The notes: generated by a model not told the origin, from the sequence alone. DNA of 64,000 nucleotides from Hyalangium minutum (GCF_000737315.1 NZ_JMCB01000006.1:310001-374000), one strand, 5' to 3'; shown: positions 4,767 through 60,132, counted from the first letter of the stretch. Translations and numbers: made by a program.

Positions 4767-5698
4767 GGCGGCGGCACCCCGCCCAGCCACTTCTCCTGCC
4801 GATCCGCGTACGCCGAGTGCCTGCTGCCCGTGCGCACGTTGGTCATCCAGTTCGCGGGGTCCGAGTCTCCGCCCGTCATGCCGGAGTCCGGGCCCTTCAT
4901 GTAGCTGAGCCGGAACCGGCTCTCCAGGTCGTCGCCGGGCCCCCGCTGCACCACGGCCATGGCCATGGCCCTGCCCGCCGCGGGGCCTTCGCCGCCCAGC
5001 TGCCGGTACATCGGGTGGACCAGCTCCTTGAAGCCCGTGTTGGTGCAGCCCTGGAGCGCGCAGTCCTCCTTCTCGTTCGGAGCACCGGACAGGCCCCAGT
5101 CATCCAGCAGAATGGCGATCTTGCCCGACCCGCAGGCCCCGCCGCTGGGCAGACCGATGGCGCACACCGGGATGCCACTGACGTTCGGGTAGTTCTTCTC
5201 CTTGAAGAAGCCGCTGTTGGCCTCATTCACGAACTCTTTGGGGAAGCGATCCAACACCCGGATCTGCGCGGTCGCGCTGCAGCTCATGCCACCCTCGCCG
5301 GCCTGGTACGGCTTGAGCCGGGCCTGGCTGGTGTTGATGCCGCCCACGTTGTCCTGCTGGCACTGCACCTGGAGACCGTCCGCCTCGGTGAACACCAGCC
5401 GGGGCGTGCCCCCGCCTGCCGAGGTACGCCCGTCGAAGTTGCCATAGCGGCTGGTGGCATCTCCCCCCGCGGAGGAGATGGCCGAGGTGCGCTTCGAGTA
5501 GTTGTTGGGGTGCACGTGCATCTGCTTGGCCGTGGTGTCCCAGAGGGCCCCGGCCGCCGCCTCGTGCACCTTGGGCATCAGGTAGCCAATCTCCGCCAGG
5601 TGGATGCCCCACACCAGGATGGAGATGAACACCAGCAGCCCCAGGGCCGTCTCCACCATGGCCTGCCCGCGGCGCGAGCGCATGCCGTGCGTTCTCAT
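4763..5698 (-). CDS. TadE-like minor pilin
   Basis: RRGQAMVETALGLLVF prepilin site plus hydrophobic helix; ATGA overlap with the upstream gene. Confidence 0.8.
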   Translation of the reverse strand: MRTHGMRSRRGQAMVETALGLLVFISILVWGIHLAEIGYLMPKVHEAAAGALWDTTAKQMHVHPNNYSKRTSAISSAGGDATSRYGNFDGRTSAGGGTPRLVFTEADGLQVQCQQDNVGGINTSQARLKPYQAGEGGMSCSATAQIRVLDRFPKEFVNEANSGFFKEKNYPNVSGIPVCAIGLPSGGACGSGKIAILLDDWGLSGAPNEKEDCALQGCTNTGFKELVHPMYRQLGGEGPAAGRAMAMAVVQRGPGDDLESRFRLSYMKGPDSGMTGGDSDPANWMTNVRTGSRHSAYADRQEKWLGGVPPP

Positions 5699-7287
5699 TG
5701 GAAGCCTCGGAAGCCTGCGTTGTACAGCGCCTTGGCCGCGTCACCCGCCCACGGCACCCCGGCTTGCTGCATCGTCGTGGGAATGTCGCCGCCGGGCATC
5801 TTGCCCTGCTGGTCGATGTCCGGCGACACCAGGGTGGCGCGCCAGTAGGGGTTCATCAGATTGGGCGGCTCCTTCCAATCATCCCCCCGGTGGTAGTACG
5901 CCATGCCCGTGGCCAGCGCCGTCTGCTTGGAGATGTCGATGGAGGCCCCGCCCGTGGCCCTCAGGTTGGAGCCCAGCTGCTTGCCCTCACTGCGGGTGCC
6001 CCGGTTGGAGAAGTGCTTGGGCGAGCCCGGCACGAAGGCGAAGTCGAAGTCCAGGAAGACGCTCTTGTCCAACTGGCCGGAGCCGCCGCCGTAGTCCCGC
6101 TGCAGCAGCGCGTACAGCTTGGGCTGTCCGTACGCGTCCGCCTGGTCCTTCACCTTGGCCTCGGTGTAGTCGTAGGTGATGGGCCAGTTGCCGCCCGCGA
6201 TGTCGCCGATGCCCGAGTGGGTTTGTGTGTCAGACGCGTTCGGGCACGTGCCGCGGCTCCACTCGTGCTTGTCCGGGTTGGACTCGAGGTTGGCCAGCAC
6301 GTCGGCGCTCAGGGACAGGGGGGGCACCGGGATGGGGCACCCGCCAAAGCGGCCGAGGTAGAAGAGGTTGCCGTGGTCATCCGAAGTCGCCGCACCCCAG
6401 TTGGCCTCCGCGCCGTGCACAGGGCCTTGAAGCTGATCCGAGCGGGCGGAAGCCCCCTCGCCCCCGAGATAGGCGATGGTCCCATACCCTTGAACGAGCT
6501 GCATGAGCTTGGAGGTCATCAGCATGGTGCCGCCACCGCGGCCCGTGGTGAAGGAGTCGTCACGGGTGCCCATGTAGATTTCATACTGATGGATGCTGGT
6601 GCCGCCGACCAGCCCGTTGCACCAGGCGCCCTGGTTGCAGTCGGAGGCGGCCTCGCGCGTGGCGACCATGTCCGCCGCATCCGGTGCGGTGATGGGCCAG
6701 GGGCTGCCGCCTGCCTGGGCGATCACCTTCTTGGCGATGTTCTGGCCCTGCAGCAACCCCGCCAGCATGTCGGAGTTCGCCTTGAAGTCGCTCTCCAGGA
6801 AGGTCGCCGTCGTGATGTTGTATTCGCGGACCTGGGCCGAGGCGGCCTTGTCCACCCCGTCCCATACGCCCTGGATGCGTTGGGCCTCCTGGCTGAGCTT
6901 CTGCTTCCACAGGCCGAAAGCGATGCCCGCCGGGATCTTCTGAGGGATGGGGCACACGCCGGCGATATAGGCGGCGATGAAGATCGAGGCATCCTGCTGC
7001 AGCGCCGCCAGCGCGTCCCGGTAGATGGAGGTCCAGCTGATATAGGCCTGCGTGGCGGACCGGGCCACCGTCAACGCCCACGCGGTGCGGTGCGCGATGG
7101 CGACCGTGTTGAAGGTGCGGGCGGTGGCCACCGCGTTGCTGTACGCGGCCGCGTCCGCCAGCGTCTGCAGCTCCATGCGCTCACGCACCCGCATACCGAA
7201 CGAGACGGTGAGCAGCACCATCAGCGACAGGAACAGCAGCATGAAGGTGAAAATGATCAGGGTTTGTCCGCGACGGAGCATCGTCAT
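5695..7287 (-). CDS. TadG-like (Tad domain) pilus protein
   Basis: RRGQTLIIFTF..., ELQTLADAAAYS motif. Confidence 0.8.
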   Translation of the reverse strand: MTMLRRGQTLIIFTFMLLFLSLMVLLTVSFGMRVRERMELQTLADAAAYSNAVATARTFNTVAIAHRTAWALTVARSATQAYISWTSIYRDALAALQQDASIFIAAYIAGVCPIPQKIPAGIAFGLWKQKLSQEAQRIQGVWDGVDKAASAQVREYNITTATFLESDFKANSDMLAGLLQGQNIAKKVIAQAGGSPWPITAPDAADMVATREAASDCNQGAWCNGLVGGTSIHQYEIYMGTRDDSFTTGRGGGTMLMTSKLMQLVQGYGTIAYLGGEGASARSDQLQGPVHGAEANWGAATSDDHGNLFYLGRFGGCPIPVPPLSLSADVLANLESNPDKHEWSRGTCPNASDTQTHSGIGDIAGGNWPITYDYTEAKVKDQADAYGQPKLYALLQRDYGGGSGQLDKSVFLDFDFAFVPGSPKHFSNRGTRSEGKQLGSNLRATGGASIDISKQTALATGMAYYHRGDDWKEPPNLMNPYWRATLVSPDIDQQGKMPGGDIPTTMQQAGVPWAGDAAKALYNAGFRGFQ

Positions 7288-7298
7288 CCCTCGGTCTC

Positions 7299-8027
7299 TC
7301 AGGGGGCGCAGTTCTGCTGACTGAAGTATTGCTGCAGCGCAGGGGTCATCATCCGCATCGAGTAGCTGGCGGTGATGGGGAAGATGAACTCATTGGCGCT
7401 GCGCGAGGTGTACTCGCCCAGGATCTGCGCCTCCATGGTGCTGTTGGCGCTGGTGGTCCAGTTCGCGTTCTTCTCCGCGAGAATGAGCGGGTTGGCCGCG
7501 GTGTAGTCCTGGATGGCGAAGTGCGCCCGGAACATCTTGGTCATCACCCAGTTGGCGAAGGGGATGCGCATCGGGTACCAGTAGACGAGCCGGACCTCGA
7601 GCCGCATCGGCGGGGCGAGCCCCTGGTCGAAGTTCAGGTCGTCCGCGTTGACGTTCGTGGGCTGCTCACGGATCAGCCAGATCATGTCCCCGTTGAAGCC
7701 GGGCAGGGGGGCCAGCTTGTTGTTCCGGTGCGCGGAGAAGGCCGCCGCCAGAGCGTCCGGTGTATTGGTGCGCTCCATCGTGGGCAGCAGCGCGGCAATG
7801 GCCGCGTGCATCATCCTCTCGCAGTTGCCGTTGTTCACGCTGCCAGCGCGCGTGGCACGGAAGGCCGCGTACTGCGTCATGATGCGCGCCTGCAGCATCA
7901 TGAAGAGCTGCAGCGTGCCCAGAAAGAGGAAGATGACCAGCGGCAGGGTGAGGGCAGACTCGACCGCCGCCTGACCCGACTCGCCATTGCGAGGCTTTTT
8001 TCCGGAGGAAGCCATTTTGAGCCACAT
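7299..8027 (-). CDS. TadE family minor pilin (start 8027 or 8015)
   Basis: SGQAAVESALTLPLVIFLFLG...YAAFRATRAG. Confidence 0.85.
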   Translation of the reverse strand: MWLKMASSGKKPRNGESGQAAVESALTLPLVIFLFLGTLQLFMMLQARIMTQYAAFRATRAGSVNNGNCERMMHAAIAALLPTMERTNTPDALAAAFSAHRNNKLAPLPGFNGDMIWLIREQPTNVNADDLNFDQGLAPPMRLEVRLVYWYPMRIPFANWVMTKMFRAHFAIQDYTAANPLILAEKNANWTTSANSTMEAQILGEYTSRSANEFIFPITASYSMRMMTPALQQYFSQQNCAP

Positions 8028-8149
8028 GCTGACACCAGTAGGTGTTCGGGGCCTATCCGCCGGTTGGCCGCGATCAGAAAGCTGAGGGTATTGATCGGCC
8101 CACACTCACGGTGCGGGTCTTTCCTTGACGCACCGGGCCGAAGCGAGGC

Positions 8150-8580: not shown

Positions 8581-10026
<1,446 letters not shown>

Positions 10027-10104
10027 CCGGCGGCGGAGGATACCAAACCGCCGCGTCAGATCCGCCTGCTTGCTGGCTGCTCGTGCTAGGCTTGCGCGCT
10101 CCTC

Positions 10105-11133
10105 ATGCCTCCCCGCAAGGCGAAGCCGAAGAAAGCGCCGGCCCCGGCCCGTCCCGAGGCCCCGGCGAGTGCCCCCGTGCCACCCACGGAGCGACCGGCT
10201 CGCCGCCGTGCGAAGAAGACCGTGGTCATCCTCTCCCGGAAGCGCTCGCTGTACTCCACGCGACGATTGGTGGAGGCCATCAAGCACCGAGGGCACCGTC
10301 CGCTGGTGCTGGACACGCTGCGATGCAGCATGATTCTGGCCAGGGGAAAGCCGCGGATGATGTACCGCGGAGTCGAGATTCGCGGCGTGGACGTGGTGAT
10401 TCCACGCATTGGCGCTTCCATCACGGCCTACGGGCTGGCGGTGGTGACCCACTTCGACATGATGGGCGTGCCGGTGGTGAACGCGGCGCAGTCCATCTCG
10501 CGCAGCCGGGACAAGCTGCGGTGCCTGCAGTACCTGTCACGCGCGGGATTGGACATTCCACGCACGGTGATGGCGCACGACCGGAGCAACGTCCGCAAGC
10601 TCGTGGAGGAGGTAGGCGGGCTGCCCGTCATCATCAAGCTCATCCGGGGCACGCAGGGAGTCGGGGTGATGATTGCCCACACGCAGCCTGAGGTGCAGAC
10701 CATCGTGGACACCTTCTGGGACCTGGGCCAGGAGATCGTCCTCCAGGAGTTCGTCGCCGAGAGCAAGGGCAAGGACGTACGCGCCCTCGTGGTGGGCGAC
10801 CGGGTGGTGGGGGCGATGCGGCGCCAGGCGAAGAAAGAGGGCGAGTTCCGCTCCAACATCCACCGAGGCGGCGAGGGGCAGCCCATCCAACTTCCGCCGT
10901 CCTATATCGAGGCGGCGGTGACGGCGGCGAGCATCATCGGGCTGGGCATCGCCGGAGTGGACATGCTCGAGGGCCACGAGGGCCCGCGGTTGATGGAAAT
11001 CAACTCCAGCCCGGGCTTCGAGGGCCTGGAGGCAGCCACCCGCCAGGACATCGCCGGGGAGATGATCGACTACGCGCTGGAGTTCGCGGAGAGCAAGCGT
11101 GCAGACAAGCGGACCCACCGCCGGGTGAGTTGA
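10105..11133 (+). CDS. rimK: RimK family ATP-grasp alpha-L-glutamate ligase
   Basis: SRDKLRCLQ, GTQGVGV, QEFV, DVRALVVG, FRSNIHRGG, EINSSPG. Confidence 0.88.
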   Translation: MPPRKAKPKKAPAPARPEAPASAPVPPTERPARRRAKKTVVILSRKRSLYSTRRLVEAIKHRGHRPLVLDTLRCSMILARGKPRMMYRGVEIRGVDVVIPRIGASITAYGLAVVTHFDMMGVPVVNAAQSISRSRDKLRCLQYLSRAGLDIPRTVMAHDRSNVRKLVEEVGGLPVIIKLIRGTQGVGVMIAHTQPEVQTIVDTFWDLGQEIVLQEFVAESKGKDVRALVVGDRVVGAMRRQAKKEGEFRSNIHRGGEGQPIQLPPSYIEAAVTAASIIGLGIAGVDMLEGHEGPRLMEINSSPGFEGLEAATRQDIAGEMIDYALEFAESKRADKRTHRRVS

Positions 11134-17529: not shown

Positions 17530-18639
17530 TCAGTGCGGAACGAACCAGCGCGGCAGCCAGTCCGCGCCCTTCGCCGTGGTGAGGCGCGTCTGCCCCGTGC
17601 CGTCCGCGCGCATCAACCACAGGTCCGTGTCCCCTTCCCGCTCCGCCACGAACACCAGGTACTTGCCGTCCGGGCTCCAGGCCGGCGCGTCGTCCCGTGC
17701 CTTTCCATCCGTGAGCGCCACCAGCTCGCCCGTCGCGACGTCGGCCCGCCAGATGCGGCTCTTCGCGTCCGGGAGCCGCTCCACGAACACCACCTTCTGG
17801 CTGTCCGGACTCCATGCCAGCTCGCGCTCCTCCAGCTTCGTCGAGGTCCCCGAGAGCGCTCGCAGCTCCGTCCCATCCGGCCGCACCACGTAGTACCGGT
17901 CCCGGCTCTCGCGGTTGCTGACGAATGAGAGCCACTTCCCATCCGGGCTCCAGCGCGGCTCGCGGTCCTCCCGGTAGAACGCGGTGACGCGGCGCACCTC
18001 CGAGCCGCCCACGGGCATCACGTAAATCTCGGGGTCTCCCTCGCGGCTCGACACGAACGCGATCTCCCGGCCATCCGGGGACACATCCGGCTCGAAGCAG
18101 CCCTCCGGCACATCCGTCAGGCGCTGCTCGGCCGCGCCCGCCTTGGGCTCCAGCCTCACCAGGTCACTGAAGCTCTGCGCGTCCGACTCGGCCACCAGCC
18201 ACTTGCCATCCGGCGACCAGCTCGCATTCCGCGCCCGCGCCCGAGGCGCGTTGAGCGGCACCGGCGCCGAGCCATCCAACGGCTGCAGCCGCAGCTGCTC
18301 CATGTGAAGCCCCTTCACGCTCCACGTGGCGATGACCAGCAGCGCCTTGCCATCCGGGGCCGGCGCCGAGGTGTAGTCATCCTCCTCGGGGCTCTTCGTG
18401 AACTGCGTCTCCTCACCCGTCGGCTTCACCAGCCAGACGTCCTTCTGCACCGCTCGCTCGGAGATGAAGGCGATGACGCCCGGAATGGCCCGCCGCTCCT
18501 GCTCGGACAGCGGGCCGGGGCCCGCGGCTGTCCCACGGCCACATTGGCTCGCGGGACAACCGGCACCCACAAGGGCGAGCGCGGCCCACAGCCGCACCCG
18601 TCCCAGCCAAGGACGACGAGGTTCGAGGCCCTGGCTCAT
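17530..18639 (-). CDS. TolB-like PD40-repeat beta-propeller lipoprotein
   Basis: Repeated P.WSPDGK; LVGAGC lipobox. Confidence 0.85.
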   Translation of the reverse strand: MSQGLEPRRPWLGRVRLWAALALVGAGCPASQCGRGTAAGPGPLSEQERRAIPGVIAFISERAVQKDVWLVKPTGEETQFTKSPEEDDYTSAPAPDGKALLVIATWSVKGLHMEQLRLQPLDGSAPVPLNAPRARARNASWSPDGKWLVAESDAQSFSDLVRLEPKAGAAEQRLTDVPEGCFEPDVSPDGREIAFVSSREGDPEIYVMPVGGSEVRRVTAFYREDREPRWSPDGKWLSFVSNRESRDRYYVVRPDGTELRALSGTSTKLEERELAWSPDSQKVVFVERLPDAKSRIWRADVATGELVALTDGKARDDAPAWSPDGKYLVFVAEREGDTDLWLMRADGTGQTRLTTAKGADWLPRWFVPH

Positions 18640-21383: not shown

Positions 21384-21971
21384 ATGACAATGCCGGCGAA
21401 TAAGGAAGAGCTCTCGGCTCGCCTCACAGCGGCGCATCCGGGAGACAGTGTCCTGGGGTTGTTCTTCACCACCGTGTTTCAGCTCGTCGAGCAGCATGCG
21501 GGGCTGGCCACGCTCACGAAGCTCCGCAAGGGAGAGCTCGCGAAGGAGTACTCCGAGCTGCGCATGTACCCAGTGCAGGACTTCCTGCATCTCATCTACG
21601 ACGTGGCGGATGTGCTCGAGAGCCGGTTCGGCTCTCCGGCGGCCGTGTTCCGCGCCTGCGGGGAATCGAGCATCAGCCGCTACAACTCCGGGCCGGGGCG
21701 CTTCCTCTTCAACGTGCTCGTGCGAGGAGATCCGCACAAGCTCTGCTCCATGGCGCAGATCGGCTACAGCACCGCCGTCTCCTATGGGCGCCGCGAGTAC
21801 AAGCCCACCAGTCCGAAGTCCGGGGTGCTGCACGCGCAGGGAGACATGATCCCTCCGGCGTACCACGAGGGCATCGTCGCTGGAGCGCTGAAGATGCTCA
21901 ACGTCCAGGGGCGCGCGCGGGCCCGGCCGCAGGGCATCGACCTGGTGGACTACGACATCACCTGGAACTGA
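21384..21971 (+). CDS. DUF2378 (TIGR02265-like) myxobacterial protein
   Basis: DSVLGLFF, YPVQDFL, YSTAVSYGRREY, PPAYHEG motifs. Confidence 0.8.
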   Translation: MTMPANKEELSARLTAAHPGDSVLGLFFTTVFQLVEQHAGLATLTKLRKGELAKEYSELRMYPVQDFLHLIYDVADVLESRFGSPAAVFRACGESSISRYNSGPGRFLFNVLVRGDPHKLCSMAQIGYSTAVSYGRREYKPTSPKSGVLHAQGDMIPPAYHEGIVAGALKMLNVQGRARARPQGIDLVDYDITWN

Positions 21972-22012
21972 GTGTCCCTGCCGGGCAGGCAGCCTTTCGA
22001 GCGGACGATGCC

Positions 22013-22216
22013 TCAGGAGTCGCCGCTGCCGCTCTCCTCGCCCAGCGCCATTGAAGTGATGGAGCCGGAGCCCCCCTCCTCGCCCAGTGCGAGGGTGGTG
22101 ATGGGACGGGGCTTGCCCTTGCCTCCCTCTTCGGGCGGGGGTTTCGGGGGTTTACCGGGCAGCCGCACGGGCAGCGCGTACCGGATGAAAGAGCGGGTTC
22201 GAGGATGACCCGGCAT
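22013..22216 (-). CDS. Graspetide (omega-ester peptide) precursor, plesiocin-type TTxxxxEE cores, 67 aa
   Basis: AGGAGG 4 nt before ATG 22216; cores TTLALGEE and TSMALGEE in a 14-aa repeat; divergent from an ATP-grasp gene. Confidence 0.8.
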   Translation of the reverse strand: MPGHPRTRSFIRYALPVRLPGKPPKPPPEEGGKGKPRPITTLALGEEGGSGSITSMALGEESGSGDS

Positions 22217-22329
22217 GTTGCCTCCTGAAACGAACGTGGGGGGCTGGGTTGCCACCCACCCATCTGTACGGGAAAGGTGAGTCCTGCTTGCCTGGGGTGG
22301 AAGTCTTCAGCCCACGAGGGGGGAACACC

Positions 22330-23280
22330 ATGCGAATCGGCATCTTCGGAGAGGGCTCGGATCCACAGTGCGCCGCGGTGGCGCGGGAGGCGGCGGCGCT
22401 TGGGGCGGACACGCTCTATATCGACAGCCGTGCGCTGGACGAGGGCAAGCCCCTGTCGATGCTGGATGGGAAGACGTCCTACCAAGGCGAGTCCGTGGAC
22501 GACGTGAAGGGCTTCTACGTGCGCTCGGTGCCGTCCCCGTCCGTGCCGGCGATGAAGAAGGACGAGTCGCTGGTGCTTTACGAGGACTGGTTCACCACCT
22601 TCACTCAGACGCGCGAGCGGGCGGCGTACTTCCTGGCGTGGCTGCTGCAACTGTCACACCGGGGCGCCACGTTGGTGAACGGTCCGCACGCGGCCAGCGT
22701 GATGCAGCACAAGCCCTATCAGCTCCACGCGCTGCGCAGCCTGGGGGCAAAGGTACCGCGCACGCTCATCTCGAATGATCCGGCGGCCATCCGTGCGTTC
22801 CACGCGGAGGTGAAGGACGTCATCTACAAGCCGGTGATGGGAGGAGCCGTCACGCGCGCCTTGGACGCCGAGGCGCTGGAGCGGCTCGACGCGGTGACAG
22901 CGTCTCCGGTCATCTTCCAAGAGCGGATTCCCGGGGACGACCTCCGGGTGACGCTGGTGGGGGACGAGATTGTGTCGTGCGTGGCCATCGTGACGCCGGA
23001 GCAGCACCTGGACTTCCGCGACGACCCTGTCTACAGCAGCGGGGAGGCGATGTACCGCGAGGTGGTGCTGCCCGAGCCGGTGCAGCGCTTCTGCCGGGCG
23101 TCGGCGAGGGCGTGCGGCCTGACGCTGGCGGGGATCGACTTGAAGCAGCGGGCGCGGGACTTCGTGTTCCTGGAGCTGAACAGCTCGCCCATCTACATGG
23201 ACGTGGAGCTGAAGGCGGGGCACCGCATCAGCCGGGCCATCGCGCGCCGGGTGGTGGAGGGCGCCCGCGCCGTCCGGTAA
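22330..23280 (+). CDS. ATP-grasp peptide macrocyclase (PsnB-like graspetide synthetase)
   Basis: KPYQL, PRTLISND, YKPVMGG, IFQERIPG, DFR motif, ELNSSP; adjacent TTxxxxEE peptide. Confidence 0.8.
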   Translation: MRIGIFGEGSDPQCAAVAREAAALGADTLYIDSRALDEGKPLSMLDGKTSYQGESVDDVKGFYVRSVPSPSVPAMKKDESLVLYEDWFTTFTQTRERAAYFLAWLLQLSHRGATLVNGPHAASVMQHKPYQLHALRSLGAKVPRTLISNDPAAIRAFHAEVKDVIYKPVMGGAVTRALDAEALERLDAVTASPVIFQERIPGDDLRVTLVGDEIVSCVAIVTPEQHLDFRDDPVYSSGEAMYREVVLPEPVQRFCRASARACGLTLAGIDLKQRARDFVFLELNSSPIYMDVELKAGHRISRAIARRVVEGARAVR

Positions 23281-23304
23281 GGCTCCGCCCTCCGAGGCCC
23301 TGGC

Positions 23305-25275
23305 CTACAGCTCCACCTGCGTGCCCAGCTCCACCACGCGGTTGGGCGGAATGCGGAAGTACGCCGTGGCGCTGCGCGCGTTGCGGCTCATCCACGAGAA
23401 CAGCGCCTCGCGCCACATCGCCATCCCCGGCTTCTTCGAGGGAATCAGCGTCTCCCGCCCCAGGAAGAACGAGGTGCTCATCAGCTGGAACTGCAGCCCC
23501 TTCTCGCGCCCCTTCTTGAGGATGTCCGGGATGCTCGGGTTCTCCATGAACCCATAGCGCGCGATGAGCCGCACGAAGCCCTGCTCGATGGGCTGCACCT
23601 CCACCCGCTCCTCGCTCGACACGTGCGGCACGTCCTCCGACAGGATGGTCAGCAGCACCACCTGCTCGTGCAGCACCTTGTTGTGCTTCAGGTTGTGCAG
23701 CAGCGCCGGCGGCGAGCCCTCCGGGTTGCCCGTCATGAACACCGCCGTGCCCGGCACCCGCACTGGCGCGTGCTCGCCCTGGAAGCTCTCCAACAAGTCC
23801 TTCAGGTCCATGCTGGCCGCGCGCAGCTTCGCCGCCAGAATTTCACGCCCGCGCTTCCACGTCGTCATCAGCGTGAAGAGCACCGCCGCCAGCGCCAGCG
23901 GGAACCAGCCGCCCTCCGGAATCTTCACCGCGTTGGCGCTGAAGAAGAACAGCTCCACGGTCAGGAACACCAGCATGATGGGCAGCGCCACCGCCCGGCC
24001 CACGTGCCAGCGCTCGCGCGCCACCACGTACGCCATGCACGTCGTCATCAGCATGGCCGTGGACACCGCGATGCCGTACGCCCCCGCCAGGTTGCTCGAG
24101 GTCCGGAAGCCCAGCACCAGCAGCACCACGCCGATCAACAGCATCCAGTTGAGCCCTGGCAGGTAGATCTGCCCCTTCTCCTCCGCCGAGGTGTGCACCA
24201 CCTCCATGCGCGGGCAGTAGCCCAGCTGCATCGCCTGCCGCGTGTTCGAGAACGCTCCGGAGATGACCGCCTGCGAGGCAATCGTCGCCGCCCCCGCCGC
24301 CAGCGCCACCAACGGGTAGCGCGCCCACTCGGGCGCGATCAGGAAGAACGGGTTGCGCGACGCGTCGGGGTTCCTCAGCAGCAGCGCCCCCTGCCCCAGG
24401 TAGTTGAGCATCAGCGAGGGCAGCACCAGCGCGAACCACGCCCAGCGGATGGGCGTGCGGCCAAAGTGGCCCATGTCCGTGTAGAGCGACTCGCCTCCCG
24501 TCACCACCAGGAAGACGGCGCCCAGCACCAAGAAGCCGTGCCCGCCGTTGTGCACGAAGAACAACACCCCCTGCACCGGCGACAGCGCCCACAGCACCGA
24601 CGGGTTGTGCACCAGCTCCTTCACCCCCAGCACCGCCAGCACGATGAACCACAGGCACATGAACGGCCCGAACACGTTGCCGATGCCACCCGTGCCGTGC
24701 CGCTGCACCAGGAAGAGTCCCAGGAGGATGATCAGCGTGATGGGCAGCACGTAGGGCTCGAAGATGGGCGTGGCCACGCTCAGGCCTTCCACCGCGCTGA
24801 GCACCGAGATGGCCGGGGTGATGATGCCGTCTCCGTACAGCAACGACGCCCCGAAGATGCCCATCGTCACCAGCAGCGGCCGCGCCCGGGGCGCCTCACC
24901 GGACCTCAGCCGCTGAGCCACCAACGCCATCAGCGCCAGGATGCCGCCCTCGCCCCGGTTGTCCGCCCGCAGCACGAACACCAGGTACTTCACCGACACC
25001 GTGATGATGAGCGACCAGAAGATGAGCGACAGCACCCCCAGCACGTTCTCGTGGGACGGGGCGATGCCGTGCGGTCCCGTGAAACACTCCCTCAGTGCGT
25101 ACAGCGGACTGGTACCAATGTCGCCGTAGACGACGCCAATCGCCCCAATGGCCAGCAGGGCTGTCCGTTTGACGGCGCCGTCCTGCCCTCCGGTGTTCGT
25201 GGGGGGAGCTTCCGTGGTTGCGTTCACGGCTCCCGCTTTAGCCGAACCCTGGCTGGGAGCAACGGGCTCGCGCAT
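23305..25275 (-). CDS. kup: KUP/HAK/KT potassium transporter
   Basis: GVVYGDIGTSPLY, ADNRGEGG, GGESLYTDMGHF; start trimmed to ATG 25275. Confidence 0.95.
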   Translation of the reverse strand: MREPVAPSQGSAKAGAVNATTEAPPTNTGGQDGAVKRTALLAIGAIGVVYGDIGTSPLYALRECFTGPHGIAPSHENVLGVLSLIFWSLIITVSVKYLVFVLRADNRGEGGILALMALVAQRLRSGEAPRARPLLVTMGIFGASLLYGDGIITPAISVLSAVEGLSVATPIFEPYVLPITLIILLGLFLVQRHGTGGIGNVFGPFMCLWFIVLAVLGVKELVHNPSVLWALSPVQGVLFFVHNGGHGFLVLGAVFLVVTGGESLYTDMGHFGRTPIRWAWFALVLPSLMLNYLGQGALLLRNPDASRNPFFLIAPEWARYPLVALAAGAATIASQAVISGAFSNTRQAMQLGYCPRMEVVHTSAEEKGQIYLPGLNWMLLIGVVLLVLGFRTSSNLAGAYGIAVSTAMLMTTCMAYVVARERWHVGRAVALPIMLVFLTVELFFFSANAVKIPEGGWFPLALAAVLFTLMTTWKRGREILAAKLRAASMDLKDLLESFQGEHAPVRVPGTAVFMTGNPEGSPPALLHNLKHNKVLHEQVVLLTILSEDVPHVSSEERVEVQPIEQGFVRLIARYGFMENPSIPDILKKGREKGLQFQLMSTSFFLGRETLIPSKKPGMAMWREALFSWMSRNARSATAYFRIPPNRVVELGTQVEL

Positions 25276-29273: not shown

Positions 29274-31265
29274 TTACTTCGTGCCTGGGGTACCGGCGGC
29301 CGGGGCCGCGCCGAGGTGCTTTTCCAGGAAGAGGATGGCGGTCATCAGCGCGTAGTCCCGGTTGGGCTTCTTCTGGAAGCCGTGCCCCTCGTCGAGCGCG
29401 AGCATGTACCAGACGTCCGCCCCCTTGGCGCGCACGGCCTTGACGATCTGCTCCGCCTCCGACTGCGGCACGCGCGGGTCGTTCCTTCCCTGCTGCACGT
29501 AGAGCGCGGCGCGGATCCGGTCCACCGCGTTCAGCGGGGAGATGCGCTCCTGCACCTTGCGCACCTCGGGGTCTCGCTCGTCGCCGTACTCGGCGCGGCG
29601 CAAGTCTCTGCGATAGGCCTGGGTGTTCTGGAGGAAGGTGCCAAGGTGCGAGATGCCCACGACATCCACCACGGCCTTGATGCGCTCCGGGAAGAAGGCC
29701 GCGGTGGCCAGCACCATGTAGCCGCCATACGAGCCGCCGTAGACGCCCACCCGTGAAGCGTCCAGGTCCTTCTGCGCGGCGATGAAGTCCAGCGTCGCGC
29801 CGATGTCCGCGAGGCTCTGCTCGCGCTTCACGCCGTCATCCATGGCCCGGTACGTCTTGCCGTAGCCCTCCGAGCCTCGGACGTTGGGCAGCAGCACCGC
29901 CATCTTCATCTCGGTGGCCAGGAACTGAGCCAAGGGGCTGAACATGGGCTGGCTCTGGCCCTCGGGGCCTCCGTGGAAGATGACCAGCACGGGCACCTTT
30001 CCGCTCGCGCCGCGCGGCCGGTAGAGGAAGGCCGGCACCTTCACGCCTCCGGTGGAGGGGTAGCGCACCAGCTCGGGCTCCACGAAGGTGTCCGTGTTCA
30101 GCCCGCCCACCTCCGAGCGCGTCCACCGCGTGGTCTTCTTCGTGCGCAGGTCCAGCTGCCACACGTCCGCGGGCGAGCGGGCCGTCGCCATCGAGAAGAA
30201 CACCGTGTCCGAGCGCTTGCCGGGGAACGCCAGTGACGTCATCACGCCCTGCGGGAGGTTCACAGCCGAGAGCGCGTTCGTGCGCGTGTCCAGCACGTAG
30301 AGCCGGCTGGAGCCATCCTGGTTGATGCTCACCGCGAGCTGGCGGCCATCCGGCGAGAGCTCGAGCTTGTCCACGTTCCAGGGGATGGACTTCGTCAGCG
30401 ATGGGGGCGCGGCGGTGTAGGGCGCCTTGGCGAGCTCCAGCCGGTACAGCTCCGAGAAGTCACTGTAGCGATCGGTGACGAGGTAGACGCCCTGCCCGTC
30501 CGCAGTGAAGAGGGCGTCCACGATTCCACCCGGGCTCTCCTTGGGGGTGAGCTGGCGGCGCTCGCCCGTCTTCAGATCCACCACGTGCAGATCCGAGTCG
30601 GCCACGGAGCGGAACTGCTGGATGAGCAGCTTCGTGCCATCCCGAGAGAAGTCCACGGGGTACCAGGTGCCCTCGAGCTCGGTGAGGCGGCGGGCCTGAC
30701 GCGGGTTGTCCGTGGGCGCCACATACACATCCGTGTCCTTCCCGTTGCGGCTCGTGTTGCTATAGGCCAGCCACTTGCCATCCTCCGAGAGCCGGAGCGC
30801 CTCGTGGCGGCTCTTGCCGTCGGTGAGCAACTCCGAGCGGCCCGTGCCTCGGTCCCACCGGAAGACCTGGAAGAACTCACCGCCGCCCACGTCCTGCAGA
30901 TAGAAGAGGATGTTCGGAGCGCCAGGAAGGAACTGGGCCTGGGAGATGGGCTCGGAGGTGAAGGTGAGCTGGGTGCGCGCGCCCATGGGCATTTCCACGA
31001 GGTGGAGCTGATTCACCTCGGCGAAGCGCGTGGAGATGAGCACCTGCTGGCCGTCTCCCGACACGTCCAGGAGCTGCGCGGCGCGGGACTCCAGGTACTG
31101 ATGGATGCGGCTCTCCAGCTCGGGAGGAACCGCGGGGACACCGCTGATCAGCACGTTGGGCTGGCCCGGGAGCGGCGTCACCCCAGGCACCGTGGAGGGC
31201 GCGGCGGCGGGCGGGGCCTGCGTGGCGAGCAGGGACACGAGGAGCGGGAGGGTTCCAAGGTTCAT
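29274..31265 (-). CDS. S9 family (prolyl oligopeptidase-like) serine peptidase
   Basis: Propeller repeats; HGGP, GGSYGG, D..VP, EGHGF. Confidence 0.93.
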   Translation of the reverse strand: MNLGTLPLLVSLLATQAPPAAAPSTVPGVTPLPGQPNVLISGVPAVPPELESRIHQYLESRAAQLLDVSGDGQQVLISTRFAEVNQLHLVEMPMGARTQLTFTSEPISQAQFLPGAPNILFYLQDVGGGEFFQVFRWDRGTGRSELLTDGKSRHEALRLSEDGKWLAYSNTSRNGKDTDVYVAPTDNPRQARRLTELEGTWYPVDFSRDGTKLLIQQFRSVADSDLHVVDLKTGERRQLTPKESPGGIVDALFTADGQGVYLVTDRYSDFSELYRLELAKAPYTAAPPSLTKSIPWNVDKLELSPDGRQLAVSINQDGSSRLYVLDTRTNALSAVNLPQGVMTSLAFPGKRSDTVFFSMATARSPADVWQLDLRTKKTTRWTRSEVGGLNTDTFVEPELVRYPSTGGVKVPAFLYRPRGASGKVPVLVIFHGGPEGQSQPMFSPLAQFLATEMKMAVLLPNVRGSEGYGKTYRAMDDGVKREQSLADIGATLDFIAAQKDLDASRVGVYGGSYGGYMVLATAAFFPERIKAVVDVVGISHLGTFLQNTQAYRRDLRRAEYGDERDPEVRKVQERISPLNAVDRIRAALYVQQGRNDPRVPQSEAEQIVKAVRAKGADVWYMLALDEGHGFQKKPNRDYALMTAILFLEKHLGAAPAAGTPGTK

Positions 31266-45426: not shown

Positions 45427-48400
45427 TCAACGCGGTGGTTCGAGCGCGAGGACGCTCGGCACCTGCTCGGGCGCCGAGAGCTTCAGCAGGCCGTAGCCGA
45501 TGCCCGCCAGCCCCATGAGCAGTCCGGGGCTCTCGCTGCCTCGGGGCAGGCCGCAGCGCCAGCCACCCTCCCGGCCCTGACGGAGGACGATGGCCGCGCG
45601 TTGAAGTGCGGCCTGGGTCCAGCGCGGCTCTCCCAGCACCGTGCCTGCCAGGTGCAGCACCTCGAGGGCTCCCAGGTCTCCGTGACAGAGGCAGTGGCTG
45701 CCTCCGAAGCCCGAACGGAACGTCGTCTCGAGCGCCGTGGAGAGTTCCTCGCGGACCTCTGGGCTGTCCAAGTGCCGCAGCGAGAGGAGCCTCCCGAACG
45801 CGATGCCCGGCGCGCCGTGGCACCACATCACCATCGACTTTGTATCCGTGACGCCGGGAGCCCGCAGGTCCTTCCAGTTGTGGCGCTCCGGTGCGTAAAG
45901 CGACCGGTCGTAGGCGAGCCCCCGGAGCGCGAGCTCCCTGTAGCGCGCATCGCCCGTGGCCTCGGCCAGATCCAGCAGGGCCCAGGAGATGCCCGTCGCG
46001 CCATGGGAGAAACCTCCCAGCGGCAGGGGCCCCGCCTCGCCCTTCCAGGCAACCATTCCTTCCGAGATCGGCTCCGCAGTGGCCACGAGCCTCTCACCAC
46101 AGTGACGCGCCACCTCCAGCAACCTCGGGTCCTTCGTTCGCCGGTAGATGCCGAGCAGGGACAGCGCGAGCCCCGCCGATCCGCTCAGCAGATCCAGCCG
46201 CGTGTCGGCGTCGATGAGCGCGTCCAGGGGTGGCAGACCGGCGAGGAGCTCGTCCATCAACGCGGGCTCGCTCCAGAGCGCCGCCAGGTGGCCGAGCACG
46301 TACACCGCCGAGCCGTAGCCCACGAAGACGCCCACGCCCGAGGCACTCTCCCGCCCCGGCTTGCGCCAGTCCTCCCGCACTGGCTCCAGGGCCGCGCGTG
46401 CTAGCTCCTTGAAGTCAGCTCGCCCCGTCTGCTTCGCGAGGTACGCGAAGAACAGCGCCATGCCGCTCAGCCCCTCGTAGAGGTCCGTGCCACTGGGCGA
46501 GAGGCTCCAGCGCCACTGCTGGAGATCCTCCAGGTTCAGGCCGATCCAGCAGGCATCCCGTGTCCCTCGGATGGCCTGCGCCGCGAGTTCCTCTCCGATG
46601 GAGACCGCAGCGGCCAGACACTCCTCGGGCGTCGCGGGAGGCAGGGCATTCTCTGCCTCCGAGGCTGTGGTGCCTCTCACCGGACCGCGGCTCTTGTCCA
46701 GCGAGACCATCGCCTTGCGGATGAAGGACACCTGCAGCGCGCGGTCCCGCGCGCCCATCTGATCGAGCCGGCGCAGCACCTCGCCCAGGCTGTCCTGCGT
46801 GAAGTAGTTCGGGATGCACTCGCCGGTGCTGCTCCACAGGTGGCGCTCTCCCGGGCGGGCGAAGAAGAAGGGGATGTCTCCCAAGCGGAGGTCCGCGTGC
46901 TCGTAGGGAGTGAGCCGTCGCAGCACGGGCACGTGGGCCGCCTCCGCCCACAGGTGATCGAGCACCCGGTCGCGCTCCAGGCCATCACGCAGGAAGTCCG
47001 GGTGGTGGCTCTCCTGAAGCAGCATGGCGTAGCGCTGCGTGGGCCGAGCGATGTAACGGACCTCCACCTGCGAGAAGGCACGCAGGCGCGGCGCCAGCGC
47101 GTCACGCTGGCTCGACAGCAAGGCGTAGGTCTCCTCGAAGCCCTGGACGAGCTCCTCGGTGAACTCGCTGGGGTCCACCGGCGCCTCGCCCAGTTTGGGA
47201 CGGTTGTTCGAGCCCTCCACCAGTCCCTGGCGGCGGACCACCCGCATCGTGTCGCTCCCCAGGTTCTCCACCGTGGGCATGGCCTGCGGCGTGAGCTGCC
47301 CGGCCTCTCCCCCGAGACCACTGATGTCGAGCCCCGCCTTCCCGTCCCGGCCGAAGAGGAAGATGGGCAGCATGCCCACAGCGACGATGGACTGATCCAG
47401 CAGCTTCCAGGCTCGCGTCCGGGCCCTCTCCGGCATGTCGGCCGGCGGCCGGTGGTGGAAGAGCGCCTCGAGATCCACCAGCACCGGCGTCTCGCCCGAG
47501 GCGATCAGGTTCTCGAAGTGGAAGTCCACGGCGGACATCAGGTGCAGCAGGGCCAGGAGACTCCCCTGCCTCCAGTAGAAGCGCTGGAGCGCCTCGCGCG
47601 AGCCGCAGCCGGTGGCCTGCACGAACTCGACCCAGCCATGGCTCCGCCGGTCCTCGACGGTGAGCACGCGGTGAGGGTGGCGCAGCCCCTGCTCGTTGAG
47701 CCCCTGGAGGAGCTGCTGGAAGTGCACGTCCACCTCCAGGGACTTCGGCTTGTAGACGAGCTTCAGCCCTGAGTTGAACCCCAGCAGGAAGACCCCCCGG
47801 CCTCGCCGGTGCAGGTCCGAGATACCGCCCTGCAGCACCACGAGCGTGCCGAGCCCCTGGCCCGGCAAGAACCGCTGCTCCAGCAGCACACGGTCCTCGG
47901 CGAGGTGCCCGAGCATCTCCAGGCTGCTCTCCAGCCAGCGCTCCAGGGCGGTGACCATCAGCCGGGCGAGCACCGGGTACTCTTCCAGCAGCGCGGCACG
48001 TGTCGCGGGGTCTCGGAGCAGGACCGTGGAGAAGTGGTGGAACCGTTCCTGCGGCGTGCTCCCGGGCAGCCGCTCCATGACGCGGGCCACATTGAGCTCC
48101 AGGATGAGGACGCGCGAGGCGAGTTCATGCAGCCGGATGGCCAGCGCCTCCAGCAGCGTGGCCTCGACACGAGGGCTGATGAGTGGCTCTTGTGACGGGT
48201 GACGCACGCCCAGCGCCGTGAGGCCCTCGTGGAGCCGGGCCGCACCGAGCTGAAGGAACGGATGGAGCAGGCCGGAGAACGACAGTCCGGGCTTGTCTGG
48301 GTCAGCGGGCGCGGAGAGTGATGAAGGGAGCGGCATGGCCTTGTGCCGCTCCTCAAGGAGCTCCTCGAGGAGCTTCTCCCAGGACGGGCCGATGGGAGTG

Positions 48401-48645
48401 CCCGCCTCGCTCTCCGCGCGCGCCAGGACCTGAAGAAAGCCCTCCCGATCCAACCCCACGCTCCTCAGGCGCTCCTCGAGCGTCCGGTCATCGGCGGACA
48501 TGACCTGGCGCCAGGCGCTCGCGCGGCGCTCGGCCTGATGCAGGGAGGCCTCACCCCCTGAGAGCGAGGCGTCTTGCTTCGACCGCGCCCGCTCGTGGAG
48601 AAACGCCGCCTTCTTCCAGGGGGAAACAGGTGAGAGCGCGTGCAT
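45427..48645 (-). CDS. lanM: Class II lanthipeptide synthetase
   Basis: YKPKSL, DFHFENLI, DLEALFH dehydratase motifs; WCHGAPG and CLCHGD cyclase Zn ligands. Confidence 0.95.
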   Translation of the reverse strand: MHALSPVSPWKKAAFLHERARSKQDASLSGGEASLHQAERRASAWRQVMSADDRTLEERLRSVGLDREGFLQVLARAESEAGTPIGPSWEKLLEELLEERHKAMPLPSSLSAPADPDKPGLSFSGLLHPFLQLGAARLHEGLTALGVRHPSQEPLISPRVEATLLEALAIRLHELASRVLILELNVARVMERLPGSTPQERFHHFSTVLLRDPATRAALLEEYPVLARLMVTALERWLESSLEMLGHLAEDRVLLEQRFLPGQGLGTLVVLQGGISDLHRRGRGVFLLGFNSGLKLVYKPKSLEVDVHFQQLLQGLNEQGLRHPHRVLTVEDRRSHGWVEFVQATGCGSREALQRFYWRQGSLLALLHLMSAVDFHFENLIASGETPVLVDLEALFHHRPPADMPERARTRAWKLLDQSIVAVGMLPIFLFGRDGKAGLDISGLGGEAGQLTPQAMPTVENLGSDTMRVVRRQGLVEGSNNRPKLGEAPVDPSEFTEELVQGFEETYALLSSQRDALAPRLRAFSQVEVRYIARPTQRYAMLLQESHHPDFLRDGLERDRVLDHLWAEAAHVPVLRRLTPYEHADLRLGDIPFFFARPGERHLWSSTGECIPNYFTQDSLGEVLRRLDQMGARDRALQVSFIRKAMVSLDKSRGPVRGTTASEAENALPPATPEECLAAAVSIGEELAAQAIRGTRDACWIGLNLEDLQQWRWSLSPSGTDLYEGLSGMALFFAYLAKQTGRADFKELARAALEPVREDWRKPGRESASGVGVFVGYGSAVYVLGHLAALWSEPALMDELLAGLPPLDALIDADTRLDLLSGSAGLALSLLGIYRRTKDPRLLEVARHCGERLVATAEPISEGMVAWKGEAGPLPLGGFSHGATGISWALLDLAEATGDARYRELALRGLAYDRSLYAPERHNWKDLRAPGVTDTKSMVMWCHGAPGIAFGRLLSLRHLDSPEVREELSTALETTFRSGFGGSHCLCHGDLGALEVLHLAGTVLGEPRWTQAALQRAAIVLRQGREGGWRCGLPRGSESPGLLMGLAGIGYGLLKLSAPEQVPSVLALEPPR

Positions 48646-48705
48646 GCGTGCCTCGTCGGAGCCGGAGGGAGAGAGAAGCTTCGATCAGCAGGAGGTGGGG
48701 AGCGC

Positions 48706-48954
48706 TCAGAACGCCTCGACGACGGGACAGACGATGATCCCGCAGGTGGCCCGGACAGGTCCGGTGCAGCCCGTGTTGGCGCCGATCGTCTTGCCGGTCC
48801 GGAGCCCACCGGTGATCTCGTGCAGCGCCTCCTCGTCGAGCTCGGTCAGCGGCTTGCCCGAGGGGCTGTCCGGGAGAGCAGCACGTTCCTGAGCGGAGAG
48901 ACGGGCACGGAACTCCGGGTCCTTCCAGGCCCGGACGATCAGATCGGTCTTCAT
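48706..48954 (-). CDS. lanA: Lanthipeptide precursor 1 (mersacidin/lichenicidin-type leader)
   Basis: IVRAWKDPEFR leader, EITGG site; 32-aa core with 5 Thr and 3 Cys. Confidence 0.9.
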   Translation of the reverse strand: MKTDLIVRAWKDPEFRARLSAQERAALPDSPSGKPLTELDEEALHEITGGLRTGKTIGANTGCTGPVRATCGIIVCPVVEAF

Positions 48955-49088
48955 GAGGATCTCCTGGGGGTGCGTCCGCGCCATCGCTGGAACGGACATC
49001 TGGAAGGAGTCCCAGGAGTCTTTTTGTGACGGCTTCCGAGGTGGGCCCCGCTCACGCGCTTCGAGGGCGCCCACCTGCGTGCCGGAAA

Positions 49089-49388
49089 TCAGAAGGTCCT
49101 GGTGAGGGTGACCGGGTTCACGGTGACCAGGTCCAGCTGGTTGAGGGTGAGCTGCCTGGTCGTCGTCCACGTCCTCGTGGTGGTGCCGCCCGTGTACGGC
49201 GAGCAGATGCACCCGTCGAAGTCGTAGTTGAGGACACCGCCGCCGACGGCGTCGTCGAGGTCTCGCTCGTTCAGCTCGGTGAAGGCCGGGCCAGCGGGGC
49301 ACTCGGGCAGCGACGACCGCTCTTCTGTGCTGAGGCTCGCGCGGAACTCGGGGTCCTTCCAGGCCCGGATGATGGTCTCTCGCTTCAT
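49089..49388 (-). CDS. lanA: Lanthipeptide precursor 2 (Thr-rich core)
   Basis: IIRAWKDPEFR, DAVGG; core with 2 Cys, 1 Ser, 13 Thr. Confidence 0.88.
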   Translation of the reverse strand: MKRETIIRAWKDPEFRASLSTEERSSLPECPAGPAFTELNERDLDDAVGGGVLNYDFDGCICSPYTGGTTTRTWTTTRQLTLNQLDLVTVNPVTLTRTF

Positions 49389-49548
49389 GTGCCTGCTCCT
49401 TGCATTGCCCATGAGTGGGCAACCAGAGAGAGTGGGCACCTGGCTGCTTGTGACGGAACTTCCGCACGTCCTCGGCGGAGACGTCACAACCCGGGCGGCG
49501 GCGCTCTACCTGTGTGCCCCATAACGGGGCTTGCAAGGAGAAGCCGCC

Positions 49549-49824
49549 ATGATGAAGGACCTGATCATTCGTGCCTGGAAGGACCCCGAGTTCCGCGCCC
49601 AGCTCTCGGCGGAGGAACGCGCGGCCGTACCCGAGTGCCCGGCGGGCAAGCCACTCACGGACCTCGATGAAGGCAGCCTCTCAGCGGTGGTGGGCGGCTT
49701 CATCGGTCCGGATCAGGATCTCAGCGACTTCAACCCCCGCATCACTCCCTACATCCGCGTCAGCACCCCCGTCCGGTTGGATCAGGTGGCCGCGATCCAG
49801 CACGTCGCGGTGCTGCGCTACTGA
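49549..49824 (+). CDS. lanA: Lanthipeptide-like precursor 3, divergent, Cys-free core
   Basis: AAGGAG RBS; IIRAWKDPEFR, AVVGG; core with 2 Ser, 2 Thr, no Cys. Confidence 0.82.
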   Translation: MMKDLIIRAWKDPEFRAQLSAEERAAVPECPAGKPLTDLDEGSLSAVVGGFIGPDQDLSDFNPRITPYIRVSTPVRLDQVAAIQHVAVLRY

Positions 49825-60099: not shown

Positions 60100-60132
60100 A
60101 GCGTGGCAGCGCCTCTGTGTACGCTTTCGTCC

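Follow-up and report, generated by a model that had tools for sequence, protein, structure and literature searches.

The 64,000-nt stretch of Hyalangium minutum DNA that was analysed (the window; GC content, 69%) very probably contains a self-contained two-gene locus for a Group 2 (plesiocin-type) graspetide, consisting of a small precursor gene and a gene for a PsnB-like ATP-grasp ligase. The locus was assigned to Group 2, in agreement with the initial annotation, because PsnB was the top match of the ligase by both sequence and fold, the functional residues were kept, a profile of the precursor family matched PsnA2, and the adjacency of the two genes was conserved. Purifying selection on the precursor was also observed.

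The coordinates of the features are listed in Table 1. The minus-strand ORF of the precursor was translated to MPGHPRTRSFIRYALPVRLPGKPPKPPPEEGGKGKPRPITTLALGEEGGSGSITSMALGEESGSGDS, in which a leader, a Pro/Lys-rich spacer and two cores are recognised, and the ribosome-binding site in front of it was mostly kept in an alignment of Hyalangium-clade intergenic regions (CCTCC in 7 of 8 sequences). A direct repeat of 41 nt lies inside the precursor gene (22022-22062 versus 22064-22104, 76% identical, 42-nt spacing), and the two genes are arranged head-to-head with a 113-bp gap (22217-22329). The 67-aa precursor, its AGGAGG sequence, the 42-nt repeat, the head-to-head ATP-grasp gene and the DFR motif of its product, all of which had been described previously, were thus confirmed by sequence reading. 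ATG at 22330 was taken as the ligase start, giving the N-terminus MRIGIFGE that is common to all orthologs; a TTG codon at 22249 was rejected for the same reason.

Table 1. Positions of the features in the window and the basis of each assignment
Feature	Position	Strand	Basis or remark
Genuine RimK elsewhere in the window	10105-11133		Rimk_N present; PF08443, 179.6 bits
Graspetide precursor gene, 67 aa + stop	22013..22216	-	ORF and translation; 21 homologs with invariant motif positions; family profile matches PsnA2(14-38), PDB 7DRM, E 0.004; pN/pS 0.43-0.60 (versus four orthologous loci)
Core 2, T54-S55-M-A-L-G-E60-E61, Ser at position 2; predicted esters inner S55-E60, outer T54-E61	22034..22057	-	Within the 42-nt repeat
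Core 1, T40-T41-L-A-L-G-E46-E47; predicted esters inner T41-E46, outer T40-E47	22076..22099	-	T40, T41, A43, G45, E46 and E47 invariant
GGKGKPRP junction, leader/spacer to first core	22103..22126	-	Counterpart of GGKGGP in PsnA2; aligned to PsnA2 'GGKGG--P'
Leader motif F10-I-R-Y-A-L-P16, variant of PsnA2 LFIEDL	22169..22189	-	F10, I11, Y13, L15 and P16 invariant in 22 sequences
AGGAGG ribosome-binding site, 4 nt 5' of the precursor ATG	22221..22226	-	Direct reading (CCTCCT on the plus strand)
Conserved block TACG..GAAGGTGnnnCCTGCTTGC, presumed shared promoter/operator	22267..22291	.	Invariant columns, 8-locus alignment
ATP-grasp graspetide macrocyclase, PsnB-like, 316 aa	22330..23280	+	PDB phmmer, NCBIfam and AF2 fold matches
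DFR loop, D228-F229-R230 (PsnB D233-F234-R235)	23011..23019	+	Residue mapping; kept in 119-120 of 121 clade members
S9 prolyl-oligopeptidase-family gene, ~6 kb from the locus	29274-31265		Nothing ties this gene to the locus

Each of the 8 Hyalangium-clade loci carried the intergenic block TACG..GAAGGTGnnnCCTGCTTGC at a distance of 40-60 nt upstream of the ligase ATG, and the other loci all lacked it. The block gave no match to a sigma-70 consensus, and a scan of positions 21900-23400 for sigma-70 promoters and intrinsic terminators found none. A sigma-54 reading (-24/-12, by eye on both strands) was rejected since the GG...GC spacing misfits, and the block was therefore given no promoter type.

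The ligase was compared with family models, structures and known enzymes. Pfam returned the generic RimK, ATP-grasp_3 and GSH-S_ATP domains only, and the best NCBIfam match was the graspetide maturase model TIGR04187 (6e-32; score, 111, which is below the curated cut-off), followed by MvdC and MvdD (65-68 bits versus cut-offs of 425-475). The top match in a phmmer search of PDB was PsnB (7DRM; E 5.7e-41), with PruB (1e-17), MdnC (2.4e-11), AMdnB, CdnC and MdnB next, and then RimK (2.4e-5). By BLASTP the ligase was 34% identical to PsnB (P0142, PPSIR1_03893; E 3e-47). An AlphaFold2 (AF2) model was built from a 39-sequence alignment (pLDDT, 88; pTM, 0.85), and its best 15 Foldseek matches in PDB were all PsnB chains (TM, 0.85), followed by MdnC, AMdnB, CdnC, PruB, MdnB and RimK/LysX.

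The residues to which functions have been assigned in PsnB were mapped onto the window ligase. In PsnB, the first ring-forming Glu is bound by R213, a catalytically critical residue, and the second by R101, which is reported to be conserved in Group 2a only; R72 contacts the core backbone, and the DFR loop (233-235) binds the nucleotide and is essential (bioRxiv 10.1101/2021.03.09.434688). R213, R101 and R72 correspond to R206, R95 and R65 of the window ligase. The leader is recognised through LFIEDL, Phe15 of which enters a pocket of Y171, I193, L196, V201 and F203, forms a cation-pi contact with R192, and is accompanied by a pair between R181 and leader Asp18 (bioRxiv 10.1101/2021.03.09.434688). 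The pocket residues correspond to Y166, L186, V189, V194 and F196, and both Arg residues are retained (R185 for R192, R176 for R181). Among 121 ligases of the window clade and 120 of the PsnB clade, the positions of R72, R213, V201, F203 and DFR were invariant or nearly so, and those of the Phe15 pocket remained hydrophobic. In the window clade, the equivalents of R72, R101, R213 and DFR233-235 were kept in at least 119 of the 121 ligases, and the R192 position was only about 50% conserved. Arg was found at the R101 position in 121/121 window-clade and 105/120 PsnB-clade ligases; by the definition given in the PsnB paper, in which this Arg is the criterion, the residues of the window ligase would place it in Group 2a.

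In a neighbor-joining tree rooted on the genuine RimK of the window, the window clade and the PsnB clade were two clean sister clades. The PsnB clade comprises Nannocystales, some Gammaproteobacteria and a Pyxidicoccus paralog, and the window clade is restricted to Archangiaceae/Myxococcaceae (Hyalangium, Stigmatella, Archangium, Vitiosangium and Myxococcaceae MAGs). The closest orthologs are from Hyalangium (88-90% identity) and from further Archangiaceae/Myxococcaceae. Public annotations of orthologs read 'glutathione synthase/RimK-type ligase' and 'hypothetical protein'.

The precursor was aligned with 21 database homologs of 46-93% identity (22 sequences), all of which shared F10, I11, Y13, L15, P16, K33, G34, T40, T41, A43, G45, E46 and E47. 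In the junction, G31, G32, K35, P36 and P38 were each conserved in at least 90% of the sequences, next to the invariant K33 and G34. The precursor ORF is a conserved gene under purifying selection (pN/pS, Table 1). Six-frame translation of the window gave one pair of T[TS]xxxxEE motifs no more than 30 aa apart (expected, 0.01 from first-order Markov shuffles), and the motif conservation is stronger evidence than this count. Neither Pfam nor NCBIfam gave a match to the precursor, a single-sequence PDB search returned chance PsaK matches only, and no PSD-type (microviridin) core was found in it. The profile of the 22 precursors did match the PsnA2(14-38) chain of 7DRM, and the alignment paired eeqgGKGkPrPiTTLAlGEE with KVTGGKGG--PYTTLAIGEE of PsnA2.

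The precursor profile was then searched against 1.84 billion cluster representatives, at least 500 of which were matched at E<=1e-3 and 65 at <=1e-10. Among the best 150 of these at least 500 representatives, the core number ranged from 1 to 19 (median, ~6), with one core in 6 and two cores in 6; the third residue of the core was mostly L, M, Q, Y, F or K; and TS replaced TT in 24 of 891 cores. The same 150 had leaders grading from FIRYELP, FIQYELP and FVDYELP, in some cases with ...LExVxGG after them, into LFIEDLP. The locus had been described as minimal, a term that does not hold, since the Archangium and Vitiosangium orthologs are single-core; other relatives have 5-14 cores. Ser at core position 2, previously regarded as unusual, likewise recurs in the clade, for example as TSMAVGEE and TSLAVGEE in Archangium.

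Conservation of the gene pair was examined in one genome per species, which gave 27 ligase loci of 62-90% identity, 26 of them informative (L027 is without upstream DNA). The Group 2 proposal was to be abandoned if ligase orthologs generally lacked an adjacent TTxxxxEE ORF; a divergent FIxYxLP/TTxxxGEE precursor was found directly upstream of the ligase in 25 of the 26 loci, and the proposal was not refuted. The remaining locus (L018) is a second pair, paralogous to the syntenic pair (L016) of the same MAG, and its divergent ORF has a variant core with ~14 repeats of the RTxAxPEE type. Leaders of the form FI[KRQ][FY]xLP were present in most loci, and the core number followed the clade: 1 in Archangium and Vitiosangium, 1 or 2 in Hyalangium-like loci, and 5-14 in Pyxidicoccus and several Myxococcaceae MAGs.

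The chromosomal surroundings of the precursor-ligase pair were of at least three unrelated kinds. The pair is flanked by metallophosphoesterase and DUF2378 genes on one side and by kup and a GAF/PAS kinase gene on the other in Hyalangium-like loci, and by ruvC and ruvA on one side and a gene for a DksA/TraR-type protein on the other in Archangium, and the flanking genes of multi-core loci vary. Since the flanks differ between clades, only the precursor and the ligase travel together, and ORF clustering of the 27 loci with Pfam searches of the flanks found no third partner, protease or transporter, common across clades. Window genes next to the pair encode an Amidase_2/Golvesin_C protein, a metallophosphoesterase, DUF2378, Kup, a GAF/PAS histidine kinase and the S9 peptidase, whose proximity reflects general Hyalangium-clade synteny only; DUF2378/TIGR02265 is a Myxococcus-specific family. 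The earlier statement that the window holds neither a transporter nor a protease was borne out for an adjacent transporter: no transporter component adjoins the pair, unlike in P. pacifica, and no ABC or PCAT transporter was found by Pfam among the 35 larger window ORFs, a scan to which ~10 smaller predicted ORFs do not belong. Its second half failed, as peptidases are present, the S9 enzyme being one example.

A rival explanation, in which the ATP-grasp gene encodes a RimK/GshB-type housekeeping ligase with another substrate and the small ORF is open merely by chance in GC-rich DNA, would fit the generic Pfam domains of the ligase, the lack of Pfam and NCBIfam matches for the precursor and the RimK-type wording of public ortholog annotation. 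This explanation is effectively refuted by the motif-specific invariance of the ORF with pN/pS below 1, by the adjoining precursor in 25/26 loci of differing contexts, and by the ligase itself, which scored 47.7 bits with the RimK family model TIGR00768 (cut-off, 143.4) versus 111 with the graspetide maturase model, the genuine RimK being encoded elsewhere in the window. Identity as a RimK family alpha-L-glutamate ligase was accordingly rejected, TIGR00768 being far under its cut-off and no Rimk_N domain being matched by Pfam in the ligase, and so was a microviridin (Group 1) identity, given the MvdC and MvdD scores far under their cut-offs and the lack of a PSD-type core. An undescribed type of graspetide, with a Pro/Lys-rich leader recognised in a mode unlike that of PsnB, was the interpretation favoured in the initial annotation, and we consider it very unlikely. 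It draws on a leader motif that is FIRYALP instead of LFIEDL, a distance of 30 residues from Phe10 to the first core Thr versus 16 in PsnA2, an invariant Tyr/Phe in place of leader Asp18 (the partner of PsnB R181), the approximately half-conserved R192 position, which in PsnB serves the cation-pi contact with Phe15, and the identity of only 34% to PsnB. Exact LFIEDL is indeed absent; however, the F, I and L are retained in S-F-I-R-Y-A-L-P, with a single residue inserted. Both leaders have F-I followed further on by L(P), and intermediates among relatives (FIQYELP...GG, LFIEDLP) connect the two forms. The pocket (Y/F171, L193, V/I/L196, V201 and F203 in PsnB numbering) is conserved, and the window enzyme retains R176 and R185. 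The leader is therefore better described as a one-residue-longer variant of (L)FIEDL(P), F10 probably being the equivalent of PsnA2 Phe15, and, with the Phe pocket conserved, a new recognition mode is unlikely. Nor is the family undescribed, STAUR_8142 of Stigmatella having already been catalogued as graspetide precursor cluster2725 (Makarova et al. 2022).

Within the Group 2 assignment, the number of esters may be smaller than the two cores suggest. Core 1 could be the sole true substrate and core 2 (TSMALGEE) a decaying or partly modified duplicate, giving two or three esters instead of four; we regard this as possible, with the odds clearly against it. The core 1 positions are invariant, and core 2 is variable or decayed in several relatives, being lost, frameshifted or mutated in many close ones (P0011-P0017, L007, L016, and TTMSLREE in Stigmatella), and the Archangium orthologs include single-core forms. 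PsnB, moreover, is reported to be efficient on native TTxxxxEE only, Thr-to-Ala data being given (bioRxiv 10.1101/2021.03.09.434688), and core 2 with its Ser may therefore be only partly modified. On the other hand, core 2 of the window retains all other motif positions (T, A, G, EE), and several Archangium orthologs have a TS core and no other (TSMAVGEE, TSMALGEE, TSLAVGEE), which argues that Ser is accepted in the clade.

For the Group 2 locus with both cores in use, the following course of maturation is proposed. The 67-aa peptide would be the substrate of the ligase, with Phe10 of FIRYALP docking in the hydrophobic leader pocket, and the Pro/Lys-rich spacer and GGKGKPRP junction would present the cores TTLALGEE and TSMALGEE to an active site closed by ATP and the DFR loop. 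Glu side chains would be phosphorylated with ATP and held by Arg206 and Arg95; Glu46 would be activated in this way first, for attack by Thr41, and Glu47 next, for attack by Thr40; core 2 would be treated likewise, with S55/T54 and E60/E61. Two nested omega-ester rings per core are predicted, the inner ring closing first (T41-E46, S55-E60) and the outer ring thereafter (T40-E47, T54-E61), so that the product would consist of two hairpin-like bicyclic units with up to four water losses. The model for this order is PsnA2, in which the rings are T32-E37 and T31-E38 (bioRxiv 10.1101/2021.03.09.434688), and both the inner-before-outer order and the roles of the Arg residues would carry over from PsnA2/PsnB by analogy. 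Plesiocin is a serine-protease inhibitor (PMC13097080); by the same analogy, the mature product is most likely a serine-protease inhibitor, and the loop residues Leu42 and Met56 are most likely its specificity determinants.

The nearest characterised system is PsnA2/PsnB of Plesiocystis pacifica SIR-1 (Group 2/2a; PDB 7DRM-7DRP), whose host, like that of the window, belongs to Myxococcota. Its 77-aa precursor (MSNDKKNNELKELFIEDLGQVTGGCRRPHPTPVGEGPATTLALGEEEPTTLSLQAEE...) is encoded immediately upstream of psnB in the same direction, a gene for a BSH_RND/HlyD-like adaptor follows psnB, and its first core, TTLALGEE, is identical to core 1 of the window. The two systems share the ligase fold (TM 0.85), R72, R101, R213, DFR and the Phe pocket, and the PsnA2-type precursor architecture of F-I-x-x-(x)-L(P), GGKG, P-x and repeated TTxAxGEE. 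They differ in that the window ligase is 34% identical to PsnB and lies in the sister clade; the leader motif FIRYALP is one residue longer, with an invariant aromatic residue at the position of PsnA2 Asp18; the Pro/Lys-rich spacer exceeds that of PsnA2 by 14 residues; the precursor has two cores (one with Ser) versus four; and no HlyD/BSH_RND adaptor gene stands beside the pair. The window genes are divergent, as they always are in informative orthologous loci, whereas those of P. pacifica are co-directional, and the divergent layout was rightly noted earlier as unusual relative to this prototype.

A direct ortholog of the window precursor is STAUR_8142 of Stigmatella aurantiaca DW4/3-1 (MPRHPKGPSFIQYELPVRLGGRPPAPVEQGGKEKPRPVTTLAVGEEGGGPPPGLITTMSLREEGGTHGG), which was catalogued bioinformatically as a member of graspetide precursor cluster2725 in Additional file 13 of Makarova et al. 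2022 (Biol Direct 17:7). It resembles the window peptide in length class, leader, junction and two-core layout; its second core, TTMSLREE, unlike core 2 of the window, carries Arg at the conserved Gly position. Group 2 members that have been produced heterologously, and that were compared by description, include RcpA/RcpB and RapA of Rheinheimera and Gra-5, which have TTxxxxEE-type cores like the window precursor. RcpA is modified by one ATP-grasp enzyme with 4-5 water losses (PMC11626197), and Gra-5 is a Group 2 member without one donor/acceptor set (PMC9576775). Unlike the window locus, these systems belong to gammaproteobacterial hosts, are encoded in multi-RiPP loci and have the extra non-canonical motifs TTxxxED and VTxxxxED. 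The enzymes MdnB/MdnC (Group 1), CdnC and PruB are alike in superfamily, leader-guided ester chemistry, the D(F/W)R loop and the R72/R213 equivalents, and are more distant from the window ligase (E 1e-17 to 1e-6; TM 0.72-0.80; 18-25% identity). Their systems have other core motifs (TxKxPSDx(D/E)(D/E) in microviridins) and a cage-like topology, and microviridins take two enzymes.

The window locus is an uncharacterised member of an established class, the Group 2 graspetides, and not a new kind, and no new class of chemistry or biology is opened by it. Its differences from the prototype are genuine: a sister-clade ligase, the FIxYxLP leader, the Pro/Lys spacer, the divergent gene order and the absence of an adaptor gene. 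No experimental work on the window clade was found in the literature within reach of the search (Lee et al. 2020, JACS, Ramesh et al. 2021, ACS Chem Biol, and the 2021 RiPP review lay beyond it), and no literature pairing 'graspetide' with Hyalangium, Archangium or Stigmatella was found. A further reading, which we hold to be doubtful, is that an exporter-less and protease-less two-gene module among housekeeping genes (DUF2378/kup in Hyalangium, ruvCA/DksA-TraR gene in Archangium), with a core number of 1 to at least 14, represents a distinct lifestyle for plesiocin-type peptides in Archangiaceae/Myxococcaceae. The leader-attached product might then be active inside the producer, or be freed on developmental or predatory lysis, and might restrain own or prey proteases instead of being exported like a conventional natural product. 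An altered geometry of docking would then account for the changes in the leader (invariant Tyr for Asp18, long Pro/Lys spacer).

The practical value of the Group 2 assignment is mainly that orthologs, at present labelled 'RimK/glutathione synthase-like' and 'hypothetical protein', can be annotated correctly. The sister clade of PsnB is large and specific to myxobacteria, with over 120 ligase clusters at >=62% identity and a precursor family of at least 500 cluster representatives; if confirmed, the window locus would give this clade its first characterised member. The compact two-core substrate with its natural Ser core would allow tests of the substrate tolerance of Group 2 macrocyclases, and repeat number could be related to protease inhibition across natural precursors that range from a single core to 14 or more.

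The second core of the graspetide precursor (core 2, TSMALGEE) was missing, truncated or frame-shifted away in many relatives within the Hyalangium clade (loci L001, L007 and L016, and the homologous database proteins P0011-P0017), and core 1 (TTLALGEE) was intact in these same relatives. At L001, which is located on a 4.8 Mb contig, an additional frameshift separated the leader from the core; this frameshift may be an assembly indel. In the precursor, conserved Pro residues were found immediately before core 1 (KPRP-I-TT).

The divergent intergenic region of the graspetide pair was found to contain a conserved block (TACG..GAAGGTGnnnCCTGCTTGC), which was invariant in 8 of the 8 Hyalangium-clade loci (L001-L007 and L016; position about 5940-5981 in these loci) and, on comparison of the orthologous loci, was not found in the Archangium or multi-core clades. 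The block is probably a promoter or operator; its sequence did not fit the consensus for sigma-70 or that for sigma-54. Comparison of the flanks of the orthologous loci revealed no co-conservation of the neighboring S9 peptidase with the graspetide pair beyond general synteny. The genuine RimK encoded in the window is a useful internal contrast for the graspetide ligase; the CHAT protein and the TadE/TadG-like pair are without relation to the graspetide finding.

Features in the window and at loci L018 and L028
Feature	Position	Strand	Remarks
TadE/TadG-like pilus-assembly gene pair	5698-8105	-	
Sigma-54 FHA-domain activator	8584-10452		adjoins TadE/TadG-like pair
Genuine RimK	10105-11133	+	carries Rimk_N and RimK domains; PF08443 score 179.6 bits
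PD40 beta-propeller protein	17530-18639	-	~3.4 kb beyond graspetide precursor gene
Conserved intergenic block	22267-22291		~25 nt
S9 prolyl-oligopeptidase-family peptidase	29274-31265	-	~6 kb from graspetide ligase
Class II lanthipeptide synthetase LanM	45427-48645	-	DUF4135 + LANC_like
LanM-locus precursor-like ORF	48706-48954	-	Cys/Thr-rich core
LanM-locus precursor-like ORF	49089-49388	-	
LanM-locus precursor-like ORF	~49549-49824	+	
CHAT-domain (caspase-like) protein	60103-63495	+	1131 aa
Paralogous ligase	L018:4889-6085	-	MAG Zod_Metabat.575
BSH_RND/HlyD-like membrane-fusion protein	L028:6958-7926	+	P. pacifica

A second, separate RiPP locus, of the lanthipeptide type, was observed in the window (45427-49824), and each of its three precursor-like ORFs has a RAWKDPEFR-type leader and a GG motif.

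At the P. pacifica psnB locus (L028), the gene for the membrane-fusion protein is located directly 3' of psnB, and the adjoining 77-aa precursor carries one TTLALGEE core and three TTLSLQAEE (TTx5EE) repeats. Besides the syntenic pair L016, Zod_Metabat.575 possesses a second, paralogous ligase at L018 (64% identity), whose partner is a long precursor in which the unit (M/V)(R/Q/Y/H)T-x-A-x-P-EE recurs about 14 times. There is a single Thr per repeat, and the conserved Gly is replaced by Pro; the repeat may represent a variant of the Group 2 motif with one ring per core.
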